64,000 nt of DNA from Trichoplax adhaerens (GCF_000150275.1 NW_002060960.1:758469-822468), one strand, 5' to 3'. Positions 33,130 to 64,000 are shown, counted from the stretch's first letter. The notes: a model not told the origin generated them from the sequence alone. Numbers and translations are program-made.

Positions 33130-34785
33130 GCTGAGTACAGTGTACAGTGTACAGTACAGAACGCCTTACAGTATGTACTGTACTGTATCACAGGTCCCGT
33201 GACCAGAACGATGATCACATGACTCAGTGTACAGTACTGAACACCTCTTGTTACGGTACTATGCACTGTACACTGTACTGTACACTGTACTGAGTAACAG
33301 TAGTCTATTTTTGCTCATATTGAAAGCTATAGAAAGCGCTAACGCCATTACCGAGATGAGCCTTGACTATTGCACACTATTCACACGTTGATCTTATACT
33401 TGATGTTGAGGCATCGTCCATAGGCAGATCAATCCATGGACCACTCAATCCCTATTTTTCATGATACTGCCCACACCAGGCAGAGCAGAGACGGCCAATA
33501 GGCCACCCTTCCACTGTAAACTACTTTATTTCATATTTCGCCCTACGAAACGCGATATAATATCACTTTTCAATCTACAAATTGCCCATCGCTGGCCAAC
33601 ACTCTACCGTTTTAATATGCCGTTGGAGGAAGTTGACGGTGTACAGTACACAGTCGAGCACAGTACTGTACAGTACTTACTTTGTACTGTACAACTGGAC
33701 AATCACTCTTGGATGGACAGACATTTCCGACCTCATTGCGCCAAAATAGCATGTCAAACACTGGATTATGAAAGTACTTTAGTATGCAGATGGTCGATTT
33801 TGAATGGACTGATTTTTTCCAAAATTAAGCAATATTACGCTCAATGTGATGATCTGTTTGTTTTACGGATTTACTAGCGTCTCTGTAGTTAGCTAATTAT
33901 AGGATTGCTTGGACTGTTGAATTGCAAGCTTAGCAGAGCTTAACAGCACTAGTTCTGTTCCGTCCTAGATCAGTATAGGTACTGTTTTGTACTGTACATA
34001 AAGGTGGTGAGAAAACAGAAGAAAGGTAGATCTTCACGTGTAAGCAAAGCTGCCGGGATCTCGCTTCGGTAGACTGAGAGCATACATAAAAACAGTCGCT
34101 ATCGTTACCGCTAACACTGTGACTAAGTTCTACTTGGAGACAATTATATGAGATTGTCGACGCTATTAGAATTAGTGCCAGTGATTTAGTAAAGAGACGC
34201 GGAAGATCCATGCTAGGTAGCCATTTGAGCGATATTGATGGCCTCCTTGGTTAAGAAAAGTCCGTCTACCTGTCCAAGTCGCTACAGTATCTACTGTACA
34301 GTCCACTAAAATGTACAATACTGTACACTGTAGAGTCATGGACTATTCAATAAGTCGTCTAATTTAGCAGCATTATTTTCGTCTCAGATATTTTAGTAAA
34401 GGTATAAATGAAATTTATTGCTAGATATTGGTATAAGCTAGAGTATTCGCACATTCATTTTAGTGACATTTTTTTTCCAGTTCAAGTCAGTCTCTAGTCG
34501 AAATTAGAAGACGCTGTACACTACACTACAGAGTACGGACTGTACGGTAGAGTACTGTCGCCAAGTGGAACATGAATTGGTGTTTCGTATGAGTAACCGT
34601 GAGTGGAATGGAACCGTATAAAACCCATGGATCATATGTCATCCATGGGTCACACAGTCAAGGCTCCCTCTCATCCCAGAGCACCGACTGGATCTTCTTT
34701 TGGTACTGTAGTCCTTGGTACAGTGTACAGTACAGAGTACTGTAAAATGGCACTGTAGAGAGTTGGCTAAGTACTGTAAAATAGT
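33130..34785. promoter_or_regulatory. Divergent UBC9/RINT1 promoter region with several TGTACA/AGTACT arrays
   Basis: Head-to-head genes with ATGs at 32871 (-) and 34937 (+). Motif clusters at 33131-33300, 33638-33692, 34283-34333, 34514-34558 and 34703-34778; E-box-like TCACATGA at ~33215. Confidence 0.6.
33930..34211 (-). CDS. Candidate small secreted protein (93 aa unspliced, 54 aa if the 117-nt intron is removed)
   Basis: The ORF starts with a signal-peptide-like MDLPRLFTKSLALILIASTISYNC. It has an in-frame, phase-matched intron candidate G|gtaacg (34108) to a polypyrimidine tract plus cag (33992). A TACAG array lies directly upstream. Confidence 0.25.
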   Translation of the reverse strand: MDLPRLFTKSLALILIASTISYNCLQVELSHSVSGNDSDCFYVCSQSTEARSRQLCLHVKIYLSSVFSPPLCTVQNSTYTDLGRNRTSAVKLC

Positions 34786-54842: not shown

Positions 54843-56096
54843 ATGAATATCACACCGGTATCCAATCTAGTTTCTGTTAATGACACACAAGGTAATCTTA
54901 GTCGATCGGATAGCTCTAATACATACTACGCGATTACTACTGTTATGATAACTTTAATTAATGTATTTGGAATGTTTGGAAATTGTTCAATCATTCTTAT
55001 TATTCGAAAAAAAAAAGAGCTACATACATTACCTTACTTTCAGATTAGTCACTTATCCATTGCAAGTGCAATTTTTTTCTTCACGTCGTTTATATTTCAA
55101 ATTATCAATCGACATTATACAAGTTTGTCAAAATCTTATCAAAATGTGTCGTTCTCTACAAATTATAATTTGAGTGAGAACTCTACCTACTTGCATAACG
55201 TCTCCAATTTAAGTGTTGCATCGTATACGAGTATACCATATTGTCAAGTTTGTGTCTCCATTCTTCTTATTTCTACCAATGTCATTACTTTTATATTAAC
55301 CTTGATTAGCGTTGGACATTATCGAGCTGTCATTTCAATGCAAAAGCAATGCATGACATGGCGAAAATTATATATCATAATCAGTATGATGTGGTTATCC
55401 GCTACTGCAATTTGTTTGCCTTATACAATTTTAGTCATAAGCACGAACACTCGTAATAAAATTATTATATGTGAATTCAGCACTTTTGAAAGTTTGCAGT
55501 CTTTTATTTCTGCTTACACTTATACTCATGTTATATTATGCTTTATCTTACCTTGTATTATCATCTGTTATTGTTATGCAAGAATTATGTTTAAATTGTA
55601 TCGTCAGCATAAAAATCGAATTGAAATTGTATCACCAGGTCGACGTGCAACTTCACAATTTCATTATTATGATCGGCGACAGAAATCAATCGTTCGAACA
55701 TTTGCAATCACAACGATACTCTATATTTTATGTGTATCTCCATATTCGGCATCATTTTTGTTGATAACTTTTCCAAAACCTACTGCTGAAAATACGGATG
55801 TAACCAGTAACTTTACAACTGCAGGATGGTTTTCATCACAGACAAGTACAAATTTATCACTATTGAATAGATCGGCAATATTCAAAGCAATAGGAAAGGA
55901 AAGTGAATCGGGAGCAAGTGATGGGATATTTTTTGCGATGGGTTGCATTTTCCTTTCTATTTTATTTGCTTGCATGCCAATTATGTATGCTCGTTCGCAC
56001 ATCAAATTGAGGAAAATTGTATTAAAAATGGTAAGATATCCATGCCAAGTTGGGCGAACAAAGCAATTGAGGGTAGCTGAATTTCGTCAGATGTGA
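54843..56096 (+). CDS. Intronless rhodopsin-class orphan GPCR, 417 aa
   Basis: Seven TM segments; GN in TM1 (GMFGNC); C3.25; W4.50; FILP...CYARI in TM5; CVSP in TM6; PIMY in TM7; N-terminal sequons. Confidence 0.92.
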   Translation: MNITPVSNLVSVNDTQGNLSRSDSSNTYYAITTVMITLINVFGMFGNCSIILIIRKKKELHTLPYFQISHLSIASAIFFFTSFIFQIINRHYTSLSKSYQNVSFSTNYNLSENSTYLHNVSNLSVASYTSIPYCQVCVSILLISTNVITFILTLISVGHYRAVISMQKQCMTWRKLYIIISMMWLSATAICLPYTILVISTNTRNKIIICEFSTFESLQSFISAYTYTHVILCFILPCIIICYCYARIMFKLYRQHKNRIEIVSPGRRATSQFHYYDRRQKSIVRTFAITTILYILCVSPYSASFLLITFPKPTAENTDVTSNFTTAGWFSSQTSTNLSLLNRSAIFKAIGKESESGASDGIFFAMGCIFLSILFACMPIMYARSHIKLRKIVLKMVRYPCQVGRTKQLRVAEFRQM

Positions 56097-57402
56097 ATTG
56101 GAAAGTCAAAGCTAACTAACAAGTATTTACTATCAATTTGGATTGTCTTTAATTGAATTGGCTATTTCCTATCACTTTCGTGAAGACATTTACAGGTCAA
56201 TATAAATTGAAAGGTTTTCATTCGACCAATGCAGTGCACGAGTAAAGTCCATCACAAAAATAAAGCGAAATCAAATGGAAACATTTAAACATTAATGTTA
56301 TGACCGTCATTTCTTTTCTCAATAATACGTAATGCCAAAATTGAAAATTGTTTATGTTTGAATAGATATGTTGGCAATGGGTAAATAGAGGGTATTTTTA
56401 TTTAATTTTGTAATTGTGTCGTCAGCCTTATTTCTCTTACCTGATCTTGCTTTAATTCGAAGTTCATGTAATTGTAAAAAGTATCTTAAACTCTCGTAAT
56501 GGTCATGATTTATTATGATTAAAATTTCTTGGCTGCATCACGCAAGGCCAGTGATGTTATGATACCATTATCTTCTATTCCATCGTGGCCATAATTTATT
56601 ATAGCTGAGATTATTCCAGTACATTAGATAATGCCAGTGGCATTATCCTATAATTAAAGTATAAAAACGATACGATTCTCAAAACCAGCCTAATTCCTGA
56701 ACTTAATGCATCATGTAATCGAAAACATGCTCATGTAAAGCTCCCTTACTTATAGAAGTTGTAAGATGTCGATGTGATACTTTCCTGTAATAAAATTAAT
56801 GCAATCCAAATGTGATTTCAATAGCAAATAAATTGTCCATTTTAACAGCTTCCTCGTGATATTCTTCTGTTTACTATATTTATATTTTGAATCTATCTTA
56901 ATTTTCTACTACATTACTTTATGCAGCGTTGTTAGATCTTCAGATCTAGGTAATTGCTGGCACATGCATGCTCTAAGTATATTGAATTATAGCAGATAAG
57001 CAATGTATGATTATCGTTGTCAGTTTTATGCAGAATTTTTATTCATTAAATATGACAATAACGTAAAAAAGTGTGCATAATGAGAACGAATTAGCCATTA
57101 AATTAAGTTGTACAATATTTTGTGATTAAATGGCTAAGTAATTTGCGTCTTTAAATTAAATAGTAATCTTAAAATACCTAGTATTAAATGTATAAATTTC
57201 GAATAAATTGCTGTATTAACGCTGTTCATCAATTAATTCGGTAAAATAGTATTTGCTCTTGTCAAGGAGTAGATCATGCAAATAATAACCACGTTAATTT
57301 TAGAGTACGAATTGACCTAATTAGCGATGTTTTTATGTCATTTAATCCGTCTCAGCCCATTGTATGTAATAATTTGAATTGGCTATCTAACAAATTACTG
57401 AA

Positions 57403-60400
57403 TTAAATTTGATCAATGTTTAATGCTTCATCAATTTTCTTAAAAGATTTCATGACATCTTCTCTAAAAGCCATGAATTGTTCTGTTAAAAATTCAATTC
57501 TAAAAAATTTAAAAATACGATGTTGAATTTGAATCCAAAGATTATTTAAGATATGATTCAATGTCCTTTATTGTTTGCAACTTCTTATCTTGTTAATAAA
57601 TTATGCTTTAACAGAATAAATTGATTTAGAATTTAAAGCGTGCAAGTACCTGGCACTAATAATAACTAAACTTAAGAAACCTCGCACCTTTTTTCTTGAT
57701 TGCCTATTCGTTCAATTGCTGATACAAATTTGGGATCCGCTGATGTAATATCAGATTTATTAATAGCACTGGTAGACTCCATGTTCTTATTATCGGCCTA
57801 AAGCGATAACATATACGTATTTCTGTGAGTTTATAGCTCGACTGGTTTAACTAATGGCCCACAGTATTTGCACCATTATTTCTAGTAGAGTCTAAACTAA
57901 GCAATAATGAGGACAAATCGTATTTTCGTCATATTTACCTGGTTCAGTTTTTTGGTATATTTGTCCGTGTGGCCTCGCTTATAAAAACGATTTCTAAATC
58001 TTAACGGCAATGTCCTTTCGAGATCATCCAAATATTCTACGCGCGATGATAACAATCGAAATCCTGCTTCTCGCCTTACTTTATCAATATCACCGACAGC
58101 TAGACCAACCTATTAAAGATAATTAAATATGTACGTTACCTGTGATTTCAACTTCTTAAAGCAGAATCGTCATCATAAATTTACCATTAAATTCGTAAGG
58201 ACGATAGGCATCAAAAATATAAATATCACAATCATTACTAATGCTGTAACGCTTTTAGGAAGCGGAATTTTATTTTTTTGGATCTGGCTCATCCAGGAAT
58301 CAGTATATTCCATTTCACCAATCATCATGTTAAGGACTGTAACTGTGCTAATGGGGATACTGTAATAGGTCGACTGAAGGATATATGAACAATAAACAGG
58401 CAATTAGTGATGTAAGAATATAATCAATGACATAAAATATCGATACACATACTGAAATTCAATCTAAATATGACTTATAATAATTATGTTGAGTCTGTAT
58501 GTATTAATGCAAACTTGTGTTGGATTTAATGTGTAGAAGCTAATCCCGAATGCCAAGGCCAGTATAAAGACGATTCCCGATATCTGAAATTTGTAAGTGA
58601 AGAATCGGTTATAATATCTAGATACATTTATACTTGACTAAAATTAACACTAGCTTTCTAACTAACAACAATAGATTTAAAAGTTAAGTAGGAGGAACTT
58701 GTCTAAATAATTGGATTCAAATATCATAATTAAAAAATTCAGATGAGAAACAAACTTTTAATACAGTCGCCATGACGGATTGTAGCATTAATATGTAGAT
58801 GCCAATGAAATCTAATCTGAATTGTTATGAAAATATTATTTTACCAAAAGAGATCTATTTTATATTGAAATGGGGAAAAAATTAATCATACCTTTCCATA
58901 TGGAATAATAAATTGACATAGGCTAAAAATATCAGTATAGTATAGATATTGAGGACATTTTCATAGTTTGCGATGTTTGTAGCTGCCAGAAGCAATGAAT
59001 AAAGGGCGATATCCAAGTAATTTGAAAACGACTTGAAATAATTTAGTCTCTGAAATAGTAAGAAATAACAACATGGCCAATTCATCACCTACCGTATGTT
59101 TTAAAAATATTAAACTATGTTGAAGATAGTAAGGTGGATAACTATTTTATTGTTGCGATATGATGCGATAGGTTATAGTTCAAGCAATTTATCAGCAACA
59201 AGTTTATTATAATCAGATAGGAGTTTTCGAAAAAAGTGCTTGTTCTAAAACATAGGAGATCAATGTGCGGTATTGTATTTATCGTACACCACTATTTACA
59301 TGAAACGTTACACTTCTATTAATGTCGAAAATTATAAGATGTTGGGCATCTTCACAAATACAGAACATCAATTTGCATAGACTTTGTAATTACTTAACGA
59401 CTACTATTGCTTATTCACAATAGCTAATATTGCGAATCAGCAATCTACTATTGTTAGCAAAGCTATAGGATCTATTATTAAATAACAAATTATATTAACT
59501 AAAGTGTTAGCGGCAATTCACAAAATCAGGCATTTTGCTGAATACCTAAAGCATTTCAGGTATTTTGCAAAGTAATTGATTTGGCAAATTGCCGTTAAAT
59601 GATATATGACTACAGTAATACTTAAACAGCTAAACTATTTATAAACCGTACATCTAATATAACTGAGAATGTTTATTCTATACGAAAAATATGGAATATC
59701 CTTCATTTCCGTTATTGAAAGCTATCTTATAATATAATTTTTTACTTTTTTTACCTGATGAAATAACTGGTAAGCTTCTAATACCACATTTATGTATGCA
59801 AATACCGTCATACATGTTTCCATGAATGCATAAATTGGTGTATCCTAAACGATTAATTTACGGCAAATAATGTGATTCTGATTATAATTGTAGTTGCGAT
59901 ATTATTAAATTTATGGGAACAGAAAGGATGAAACTTTGGATTTACATACTATTAGCGTAGCTTTCAGCAGTATTTTAACACAATGCAACTTACAAAAATC
60001 GCATAATATTTCTTCGGAGAGTCTGGAAGTGGCTCATATGTTGTTACCAAATCGCTTTGTGTAGTTGGTGGAGCATCAGTCTTGCTAATTGATGCAGATG
60101 GTTGATTAGTGCTAGATACTACTTGAGAAGGTGTAATATTAGGATCACTTAACGCCTTTCCTTGACGTTTACGCGCCATTAGTGATGAATCGATTGAATG
60201 AGATATCGATGGACGAATGAGGTTGGTATCTGATCCTTTAGAAGGCTGAAGATGATTATCAGAAATCGATGAAGATAGCCAATCAGGTGCAAAAACTGAC
60301 ACTAAAATAAAAAAATGTCAAATGACGTAAATTAATTGATGGAGATTTATTGAATCGGACATCTTCTCTTCGCATAACGCCCGACATTATGTTGATAACT

Positions 60401-63400
60401 TATGTGGAATACCTACCGGAATAAAGGTCTTGGCTGTACGAAGCATCTACCGTAGGTGTAACCGTATAGACTGTACTAGATATACCAGTTCCAGGCTTTA
60501 ATCCTAGACCACGAATTGCTTCTCTTGGCATATAGTATACTCTATAGTCTTCGGCAATAATTCCATAACATGATAGGCAAATTAAAAAGATTAGATATAC
60601 ACCGAGGTTGATGTAGTAGAAGTATTGGCCAAATTTTCGCCTAGGATTTGCAAAAGAGGGTAATCGATCAGGATTCTTTTAGAAAGTGACATAACTACTG
60701 TTATGTTACTGTAGTGCAGCCCCAAATATAGCTTAGATTATTATTATAAGACTGTACGAGAATAACTTAACTTGTAAGCTAGAGTGTAAGATTGTGTAAG
60801 AGTCTATTGCGATTTAATGGGTAAGATAAGATTTGTTACAGTAAAAGCATTCTGTAACTAATCGTATATAAATCGTGAATTTTGCTGTAATAAGTAGATT
60901 GTCAGATAGTCAGATAGTCCTTGGTAAGTTAGACGAACCTAACTTCTGTAATAAAGTGAAATTTGCAAGAAACTGTAGTTCTTGATTTATTGTTTTGAAG
61001 ATCATTTTATCACAGTTACATTAGCTACGAGCTATGTATCCGTTTACAAAATGTTTCAATAAAATTGAATATAGTATATTCTTAATTTATATGGTATATC
61101 TATTATATGAGAACTTTTTAGTAACCATTTATTATAAAATTCATGATAGCTTCCTAAATGGATTTCTAGTTTCAAAAATTGATTAGTTTATAATCATAGT
61201 TCACTTCACCTACCACTTTAATTCTCGTAATTTTTCTGCCAACGGATGTCTTAATAGACCTACATTTTTATATTCCATCATGGTCTAAGCGATAAAATTT
61301 AGATATTAATTCCTTCTTCGATGAAATAAATGAATTTGATTTACTGTAACTCTAAAGAGGGAAATTATTTACTCTTACTGCAATGCTTACAAAGAAGTAT
61401 AGGGTTAAATAATACTGAACACATGTTGCGATCAATTTTGTTATTTCATTTCGAAGATTATTTTAAATGTTTCAAATTTATTAGAATTTCAGAATCGATA
61501 TGATTTATTCAATGCGTACCGAAAAATTATTTGGTAATCTTAGCAATAATAAATGCTTACAGTTAACGCGTTATTATTATTTCTCTTTTTTAAATGCTGT
61601 CCCTGTAATTCAAATTCAGGTCCAGGGTCTACCAAACTGAAATCATAGGATGTTTCCATTTGCTAGGATATAAATAAAATATTACACGACATAGTTAGCA
61701 TATCTAGCAATTAATATCGTGTATTTCTTACGATTTAATTTCTAATTTGGTCTCTGATATTAAACCTGACATATTACTTTTGCCATTCCAATTTAAATTT
61801 TCGAAAGACCAAAGTAATTTATTAAAATATTTTGAATTCAATTTTACGCCATGCAGACTCAAATCGTATACGTTAATTTTAATTATAATATTTCGAAATG
61901 GATTAAATAACGCTTCAATTTAACAGTGATGGTTAACTACCTTTTCAACGCCATTCTTTGTTCTGACTATATCTCTAACGTGAGTTTCAATGCATGAATC
62001 CATGACTATCTAAGTAATATGAATCAGTGCACAAAAACATTTCAAACATTAAAAAAATTTTAAATTTATAGTTACCTTTCGGGAGCCTTAACTATTAATA
62101 TTTTGAGCTATTACCTTGGCTACACTAGGTAAGTGTCTTATCATGTACTGCATAGTAGTTATCCCGTCTTTATTTACATTTAAGAGTAATTGTCGTCCAC
62201 TATAATCAAAGTAGATCGAAAATATGAATGTTATGTAGGTGAACAATTTAATTATAGAGAATTTAAAAAGAGATTTTGCTTCTTCGAACAATAATATCGA
62301 AGGCAGTTATTAATTGAGACTGTAATCTCTATAATTGCGATTTATACCTGTACTACCTAAAATAGGTATAGAATGAAGAAGTAATCATAATTTTATGCTC
62401 ATTGCTTACTATTTATGCTTGAAAAGGATTATAGCAACCATTTCTTGTCTATGTTCTATGGCGTAATCTAAACTGGTCTTCTTATTTTCATCAGTTGCTA
62501 AAGTATCCGCACCATAATCTACAAGTAGCTTTGCTATTTCATGAAATCCTCTGGCGGCGGCTGTATGCAATATCGTTTCCTATAACATTTTTTGGCATCA
62601 TAACGCATGAAAATAGTAATTGATAATAAGGGTCATGAAAAAAAAGTAAATTGCGAACAATTTTGAAAGTCTTACTCATTAACTATTAAATTAGAAATAG
62701 AAAATAATGTAAGGCCATTATCTTAACATAATCAATCTAATAAAAGTGTTATCTTATACTAAGAACAATGATTCCTACCCCTTTAGAATTTGCGATATTT
62801 GGAGAAATGCCATGATTTAATAACAGCTCAACAATACTTGTGTAGCCCTTATTGACCGCAATTTCAATCGGCGTGATATAACTGCCGTCCCTAATCGCAA
62901 GCAATATATGGTGCTTAATTAATCGTTGAAGAACGCGAAATGACAATTGCCTACGATGAATGATCACTCATACTTCTGCAGTACTGTACAATAAATTTAA
63001 GTTAATGGCTAATAATTATACTTGAATCTTCATATCGGCTATATGGAAAATTAGAAATATTGGCAGAAAAAATGAGGGCGAGCTTACCGTTTCGCAGCAT
63101 CAGCACCATAATTCAGCAAATACTGAATCGCCTCAAGATGACCACTTATCACAGCAACGTGCAAAGGCGTTCGTGATCTATCACCAATGCTGTTGATTAA
63201 AGAGGGCCCATTTTGGCATATTACTTGAATTGATTGAAGACTGCCACTTCTGAAGTAAATAGAAATACAGAAATATTCTAATAGAGTAAATCATATACTC
63301 TTAATTATTATTTCTTGTAAATGATCAGTTTTTGCGATATTAAATCGTTTTAAATTTTAGAAAGAGTTTCTGGTAATTTGATTATTTGAGTTAAGATTTA

Positions 63401-63607: not shown

Positions 63608-64000
63608 CTACTTATTGAAAATGTAATGAACTTTCTCAAGACCAGGATAATTTGTCATGTATTACCAGAATTTCTTAGTGTGTAATGGCTAAATAAATCG
63701 TGCTAGTCATACTAAAACGTATTACGGATATTAAAATCAGCCTTGATTGCTATTGCAAAATCTGGAGTGATCAGATGGCCTGTTCGCTGTAAAGCGTTAT
63801 CATCAAGGCCAGCATACATAAAATTTATAATCTAGCCGCTATTTATATCACATTAGAACAGCAATGTTAACGTTAAATATAAAAGTACATCTATATGGTA
63901 ACTTAAAGGGCCACATTCACCGAATTATATGCACCTATGATACAAAATGTAATCAAAAACTGAGCGTATACAGAATCTAGAACCTCATAACTTCCGGATT

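Follow-up and report, generated by a model that had tools for sequence, protein, structure and literature searches.

A TRPA-like channel gene near the end of a 64,000-nt stretch of the Trichoplax adhaerens genome (GCF_000150275.1 NW_002060960.1:758469-822468; hereafter the window) has a 308-nt exon between the exons for its first two transmembrane helices, S1 and S2. This raises the question of whether the exon is coding and, if it is, what kind of segment it adds to the channel. The exon (exon B, 59994-60301) contains 102 whole codons, all within the S1-S2 loop. Based on its frame, phases, splice signals and codon structure, exon B is very probably a genuine protein-coding exon, and we are confident that it is coding and that the segment it encodes is extracellular and disordered. 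The reading that we favour, and consider probable, is that exon B extends a disordered glycan-bearing spacer, at the long end of a pattern that occurs throughout the channel family.

The gene has multiple exons and is on the minus strand, as are all of the exons and introns described here. Exon A (60417-60640, 224 nt) encodes a pre-S1 RKFG motif, the S1 helix and the first 45 residues of the loop. It has a frame offset of 1 and 1 base left over, and ends in phase 1. Its residues 1-65 match the S1 exons of paralogous genes (tblastn), and its loop portion includes the motif R-E-x-I-R-G-L, which is common to many of these paralogues. Intron A/B (60302-60416, 115 nt, GT..AG), in which a T-rich tract precedes the acceptor, contains in-frame stops, so that read-through is impossible. 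Exon B is entered in phase 1 and exited in phase 0. Intron B/C (59845-59993, 149 nt, GTAAGT..TTTAG) leads to exon C (59755-59844, 90 nt, phase 0 at both ends), which encodes the final four loop residues and S2 (..N-V-V-L-E-A-Y-Q-L..) and matches paralogue S2 exons (tblastn). It is reasonable to assign S1 to exon A and S2 to exon C. Both junctions are canonical (CCG|GTAGGT...TTTTAG|TG for A/B and TTT|GTAAGT...GTTTAG|GA for B/C), and direct translation of exons A, B and C via the GT-AG introns yields a single open frame. The translation reproduces the exon arrangement and the exon B phases of the original prediction, including the exact peptide that it quoted.

The frame that contains exon B is 117 codons from stop to stop, one of two frames of more than 100 codons on the minus strand between 44000 and 64000. 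We simulated the 572-nt interval from the exon A donor to the exon C acceptor and looked for internal exons, bounded by AG and GT, that were open and had the phases needed. A chance exon of at least 308 nt occurred in 2 of 5,000 simulations using an intron-trained composition (4e-4), and in 26 of 5,000 (5e-3) using the composition of the interval itself, which is inflated by the exon. The codon-position chi-square of exon B is 38.5, a value reached by none of 3,000 null samples of non-stop codons, whereas 306-nt intron segments have values of only 4-7. C content is 41% at codon position 2 versus 8% at position 3, and GC content at the third position (0.22) is well separated from that at the first (0.46) and second (0.51). 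Overall, the GC content of exon B is 0.40, compared with 0.32 and 0.30 for the flanking introns, in a window that is AT-rich (GC ~30%).

Splice sites were scored with a hand-made consensus matrix that was not trained on the T. adhaerens genome, and the scores are thus only indicative. The exon A donor at 60417|60416 (CCG|GTAGGT) has the highest crude score in the region, 10.1. The acceptor of exon B, which follows a long T-tract, and its donor are both good. Because the main donor leaves exon A in phase 1, it cannot be joined directly to exon C, and exon B is needed to restore the frame.

The remainder of the gene is, as judged from its ankyrin array, six-transmembrane layout and TRPA1-type pore/S6 and post-S6 segments, an intact TRPA-like channel. 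Database searches were run exon by exon, and the joined protein was used only for frame, hydropathy and composition. The last ankyrin-repeat exons inside the window are at 62412-63290, and three upstream exon pieces match Pfam Ank families with E values of 4e-10 to 4e-7. Open reading frame (ORF) pieces with ankyrin motifs continue for ~3.5 kb past the window end (position 64000), to about L034:3500. A rough count, made by regular expression only, gives 14-17 repeats; the ankyrin array of TRPA1 has about 14-18.

The exon for the pore helices and S6 (58185-58373) has nine matches in PDB with E values up to 1, and all nine are TRPA1 (best E 1.2e-5, human residues 891-959). Its Pfam matches, to Ion_trans and PKD_channel, are weak and under the curated cut-offs. 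The post-S6 exon (57939-58109) encodes a TRP-like helix and begins V-G-L-A-V-G-D-I; it has the TRPA-type helix G-L-A-V-G-D-I in place of the canonical TRP box. Its nine best PDB matches are also TRPA1, to human residues 957-1000, and although weak (E 0.012) they are contiguous with the match of the pore exon. These exon-by-exon matches favour TRPA1 over other TRP classes and, together with the Pfam ankyrin matches, bear out the TRPA-like identity first proposed for the gene.

An eight-exon model of the transmembrane domain reads through 423 residues without a stop. Its hydropathy profile peaks where S1, S2, S4, S5 and S6 are expected; S3 is under the cut-off. Included in this model are an exon for the S2-S3 linker, S3 and S4 (58892-59049; R-L-N-Y-F..N-Y-L-D..), a 61-nt S4-S5 linker exon (58756-58816) that brings the S4 and S5 exons back into one frame, and the S5 exon (58515-58583). 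The start of the S3-S4 exon resembles S3 of polycystin-2, but its PDB matches are non-significant. The model has E-x-x-Q in S2 and N-x-x-D in S3; the S2-S3 calcium site of human TRPA1 is formed by E and Q of S2 with N and E of S3, and any residue correspondence between the two is tentative. The single S1 exon and the single S2 exon gave nothing meaningful in phmmer searches of PDB. A profile of 20 paralogous S1 exons had weak best matches (E 0.08-0.4) to the S1 segments of TRPV6 and Drosophila TRPA1.

With S1 ending in ..CYGII and S2 beginning with IYAFMETC.., the loop between them has 152 residues. It contains no Cys, is 26% Ser and Thr (36% with Pro) and has a net charge of about -2. The Ser plus Thr content is 11% in the remainder of the transmembrane-domain model. 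Exon B alone is 28% Ser and Thr and 39% Ser, Thr and Pro, and is also Cys-free. The only N-x-S/T glycosylation sequon of the loop (NIT) and a basic cluster, ARKRQGK, are both within exon B. These values agree closely with the roughly 150-residue, Cys-free and Ser/Thr/Pro-rich segment with a basic cluster that had been described between S1 and S2. The loop lacks a hydrophobic segment (the maximum 19-residue Kyte-Doolittle mean is 0.44), and Tandem Repeats Finder detected no tandem repeat between 59700 and 60700. Given the topology of TRP channels, a segment located between S1 and S2 is expected to be extracellular.

No Pfam family matches exon B even at an E value of 1, including PKD_channel, and there is no match to an adhesion or lectin domain. 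AlphaFold2, run on exon B as a single sequence, predicted no secondary structure, with a mean predicted local distance difference test (pLDDT) score of 57.5 and a predicted template modelling (pTM) score of 0.12. This is in agreement with the composition of the loop, the absence of Cys and the lack of a hydrophobic stretch. As the loop is long, outward-facing and apparently disordered, a glycosylated "brush" is plausible.

TRPA1 of human and Drosophila (PDB 6V9V, 7YKR and others) shares with this gene the N-terminal ankyrin array, the pore/S6 region and the post-S6 helix G-L-A-V-G-D-I, as well as an extracellular S1-S2 linker with glycosylation sequons. The human linker starts at P742-G743 and extends to about D763-771, i.e., ~22-30 residues, of which 748-763 were modelled; it has two consensus sites for glycosylation, shows flexibility in the cryo-electron microscopy map, binds protoxin-I, and modulates both gating and expression (PMC5281607). 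The loop of 152 residues is far longer than that of human TRPA1, in agreement with the original prediction, and differs in being encoded partly on an exon of its own. The P-G start of the vertebrate TRPA1 linker is absent. The gene also differs from TRPA1 in being one of a family, with 31 additional pore-exon matches in the genome, instead of a single-copy orthologue.

Two other types of extracellular segment invite comparison. The S1-S2 ectodomains of TRPP and TRPML channels (polycystin and mucolipin domains) are folded, conserved and disulfide-containing, with ~200 residues. They are large insertions at the same topological position, but the segment encoded by exon B is Cys-free and of low complexity, without a Pfam match or predicted secondary structure. 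Mucin domains consist of tandem repeats rich in Pro, Thr and Ser and extend for hundreds to thousands of residues. Like these, the loop is extracellular, enriched in Ser, Thr and Pro, Cys-free and predicted to be disordered. It differs in its lack of tandem repeats, in the Ser/Thr/Pro content of exon B given above, and in its length of 102-152 residues (exon B and entire loop, respectively). The term "mucin-like", applied to the loop in the original prediction, therefore goes too far: Ser and Thr are enriched (28% in exon B versus 11% in the rest of the transmembrane domain), but the segment is not of mucin grade.

To place the loop in the context of its gene family, we searched the assembly (105.6 Mb in 1,414 contigs) with the pore exon. 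This yielded 31 matches in addition to the pore exon itself, and the E value is below 1e-5 for 22. Most are in tandem arrays on two contigs, C1413 (at ~0.56-0.65, 0.84, 1.46-1.50, 1.94, 5.36-5.69 and 6.93 Mb) and C1410 (6.78-6.85 Mb), comprising loci L003-L032, and matches within the arrays are spaced ~11-14 kb apart. Judging from these pore exons, the genome carries a large TRPA-like expansion. Previously identified Trichoplax TRP channels are TRPM, TRPML, TRPP and TRPV, with no TRPA listed (thermotaxis paper, PMC10498350).

The paralogue comparison used the best 20 of the 31 further loci. In all 20, the S1 exon encodes an R-x-F-G...N-L...Y...F helix that is followed, in the same frame, by a tail in which Ser, Thr, Asn and Pro are abundant. 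For the 18 loci with a working motif anchor, the tails extend for 41-113 residues to the frame end and have 0-2 Cys, 15-36% Ser and Thr, and one to five N-x-S/T sequons. Of 21 genes scanned, 14, including the window gene, have an S2 motif, N-x-x-[KREL]-E-x-[YF]-Q. Direct S1-to-S2 junctions modelled for the 13 paralogues with this motif give loops of ~39-111 residues, mostly ~50-60, the shortest in L017 (~39) and the longest in L014 (~111). About 15 residues past S1, roughly half of the paralogues have the motif R/K-E-x-I-x-G-L (or F-K-G-L) (alignment A1; 60490-60639 in the window). This motif is the sole part of the loop that can be aligned; beyond it, the tails of the paralogues are non-alignable. 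Possibly, the R/K-E-x-I-x-G-L stretch is structured and contacts the sensor domain.

Two paralogues on contig C1413, L013 and L014, illustrate both the likeness and the difference. Their exon layout around S1 and S2 is the same as that of the window gene, identity is 45-55% in the S1, S3-S4 and pore exons, and the same conserved loop start leads into a Cys-poor tail rich in Ser, Thr, Asn and Pro. In the paralogues, however, the tails are inside the S1 exon and none has a counterpart of exon B. On the basis of these comparisons, a long, sugar-prone and variable S1-S2 linker appears to be a trait of the family, of which the window gene is the extreme. Because loops of like composition are present in all 20 paralogues, the loop is not a special device of one gene. 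The weight of the original prediction had turned on whether long Ser/Thr-rich S1-S2 loops are already common and described. They are common within this genome, and in the literature that we searched, we found neither placozoan TRPA loops nor long S1-S2 loops of non-bilaterian TRPA described.

What distinguishes the window gene is how its loop came to be the longest, apparently by acquisition of a private extra exon. A tblastn search of the 20 paralogue loci with exon B found nothing in any S1-S2 interval. The only match with E <1 (E 0.47) is at L016, upstream of the S1 exon of that gene. A six-frame search of the whole assembly recovered only exon B itself, and BLASTP produced no alignment between exon B and the long loop tail of L014. 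A phmmer search of 1.84e9 representative proteins, a collection whose coverage of the gene models of this genome is unverified, returned no matches. Exact look-up in the protein collection of the ORF of exon B, started at Met, and of a neighbouring single-exon seven-transmembrane ORF (L034:7999-9123) was blank for both.

Taken together, these observations suggest the following role. Exon B would be translated and, with the tail of exon A, would form a 152-residue linker at the outer edge of the bundle of helices S1-S4. The stretch beside S1 that is conserved probably lies against the sensor domain, like the human TRPA1 linker. The variable tail would serve passively as a spacer or shield that carries glycans and is only weakly constrained in sequence, in line with the unrelated sequences and varied lengths of the paralogue loops. 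Instead of serving as a dedicated gating module, such a linker may affect how the channel folds, its expression at the cell surface, or how accessible the sensor domain is.

Several points weigh against this proposal. We infer the inclusion of exon B in the mRNA from genomic sequence alone. The single N-glycosylation sequon in exon B is fewer than in most paralogue loops. Orphan sequences often receive low single-sequence AlphaFold2 confidence, and the model thus indicates disorder of the loop only weakly. The blank phmmer result, for its part, says nothing firm about existing gene models or about other placozoans.

The alternative that survives best is that exon B is a cassette, used only in some transcripts, so that the main donor would give the 152-residue loop and an internal donor in exon A a loop of ~39 residues. 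We regard this as unlikely, though worth serious consideration. A candidate phase-0 donor is present at 60449-60451 (ACG|GTAGAT; the last exon base is 60451 and GT occupies 60450-60449). Its junction with exon C is open and in frame, and bypasses exon B. The resulting loop of ~39 residues equals the shortest one modelled among the paralogues (that of L017). The crude score of this donor, 5.9, is within the range of modelled paralogue donors (2.7-10.5), but the main donor, at 10.1, is far stronger and only 34 nt downstream, and the case leans on a rough consensus matrix that is untrained on this genome. Exon B had been described as unskippable. This is correct for plain skipping, which causes a frameshift with the main donor, but the weaker in-frame donor at 60451|60450 could provide a bypass. 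There is also a second in-frame acceptor at 60295, 6 nt into exon B (TTTTAG|TGTCAG|TTTT), the use of which would remove two residues (S-V).

TRPA channels are polymodal sensors. In a more ambitious interpretation of the family, the non-alignable, glycan-prone loops could be diversified, environment-facing specificity elements of the large TRPA-like receptor repertoire of an animal without neurons, and exon B a recently born exon that provides one member with an unusually long O-glycosylated arm with a role of its own, for instance in the sensing or binding of mucus, biofilm or matrix. We consider this improbable.

Decidedly improbable is the specific device envisaged in the original prediction, in which the loop is a dedicated module, either an O-glycosylated tether to mucus or matrix that couples mechanical or osmotic stimuli to gating, or a segment that gates the channel when cleaved at KR. 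The segment is extracellular, long, flexible and rich in Ser, Thr and Pro, and in human TRPA1 gating is indeed influenced by the S1-S2 linker (PMC5281607). However, the presence in all 20 paralogues of loops of the same kind, with unrelated sequences and varied lengths, argues for weak constraint. The loop is without repeats and exon B without an adhesion or lectin domain, and we found no support for a tether to mucus or matrix. Protease gating at KR is similarly without support. The ARKRQGK cluster is not a full furin motif, given that RKR lacks Arg at P4, and no basic cluster is conserved in the paralogue loops; a furin or prohormone-convertase site at RKR was rejected for these reasons.

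It is also very improbable that exon B is unexpressed, i.e., a chance or decaying frame within one long intron, with S1 and S2 joined otherwise in the mRNA. The absence of exon B from the representative proteins searched is consistent with this possibility, as are the absence of a paralogous counterpart and the apparently direct joining of S1 to S2 in the closest paralogues. The frequency of such a frame in the simulations, only 4e-4 to 5e-3, is against it, as are the strong codon periodicity, which introns lack, the higher GC content relative to the flanking introns, the good acceptor and donor, and the phase of the best exon A donor, which does not fit exon C. It is extremely improbable that the segment folds into a small ectodomain like the polycystin/mucolipin domain of TRPP and TRPML, as the sole support for this is the position between S1 and S2, and exon B has no Cys, no Pfam match, no homologues found and no AlphaFold2 secondary structure in a low-complexity sequence.

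The TRPA-like gene as a whole starts beyond the window end and extends to ~57406, the C-terminal exons being located from 57937 to that point. A separate contig (C738; L001, 1,851 nt) has 97-98% identity to 56935-57312 and 57737-58527 of the window, the 3' part of the gene, and stops short of exon B; an allelic haplotig that was left unmerged is the probable explanation. The other of the two minus-strand frames of more than 100 codons between 44000 and 64000 has 121 codons and is located downstream of the channel gene (55724-56086). Past the window end, an intron in the ankyrin region of the same gene (L034:2533-3171) contains a 91-bp tandem repeat of 6.9 copies with 74% matches, the units of which start with GTAC. 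This repeat may be related to GTAC arrays at 33131-34785. Also outside the window, upstream of the TRPA-like gene and on the minus strand, is the single-exon frame of 375 codons mentioned above (L034:7999-9123), which contains about seven hydrophobic stretches as well as N-x-S/T sites near its N terminus. From these features, it looks like a rhodopsin-type G protein-coupled receptor.

In summary, exon B may be a case of an orphan coding exon, private to one gene, that was inserted into a channel conserved in its other parts, and the consequence of this single exon is modest. The more interesting lead is the occurrence of hypervariable outward loops throughout the family. In a nerveless animal with dozens of TRPA-like genes, long, sugar-prone S1-S2 linkers of unrelated sequence may represent an under-described axis of variation within a channel family.

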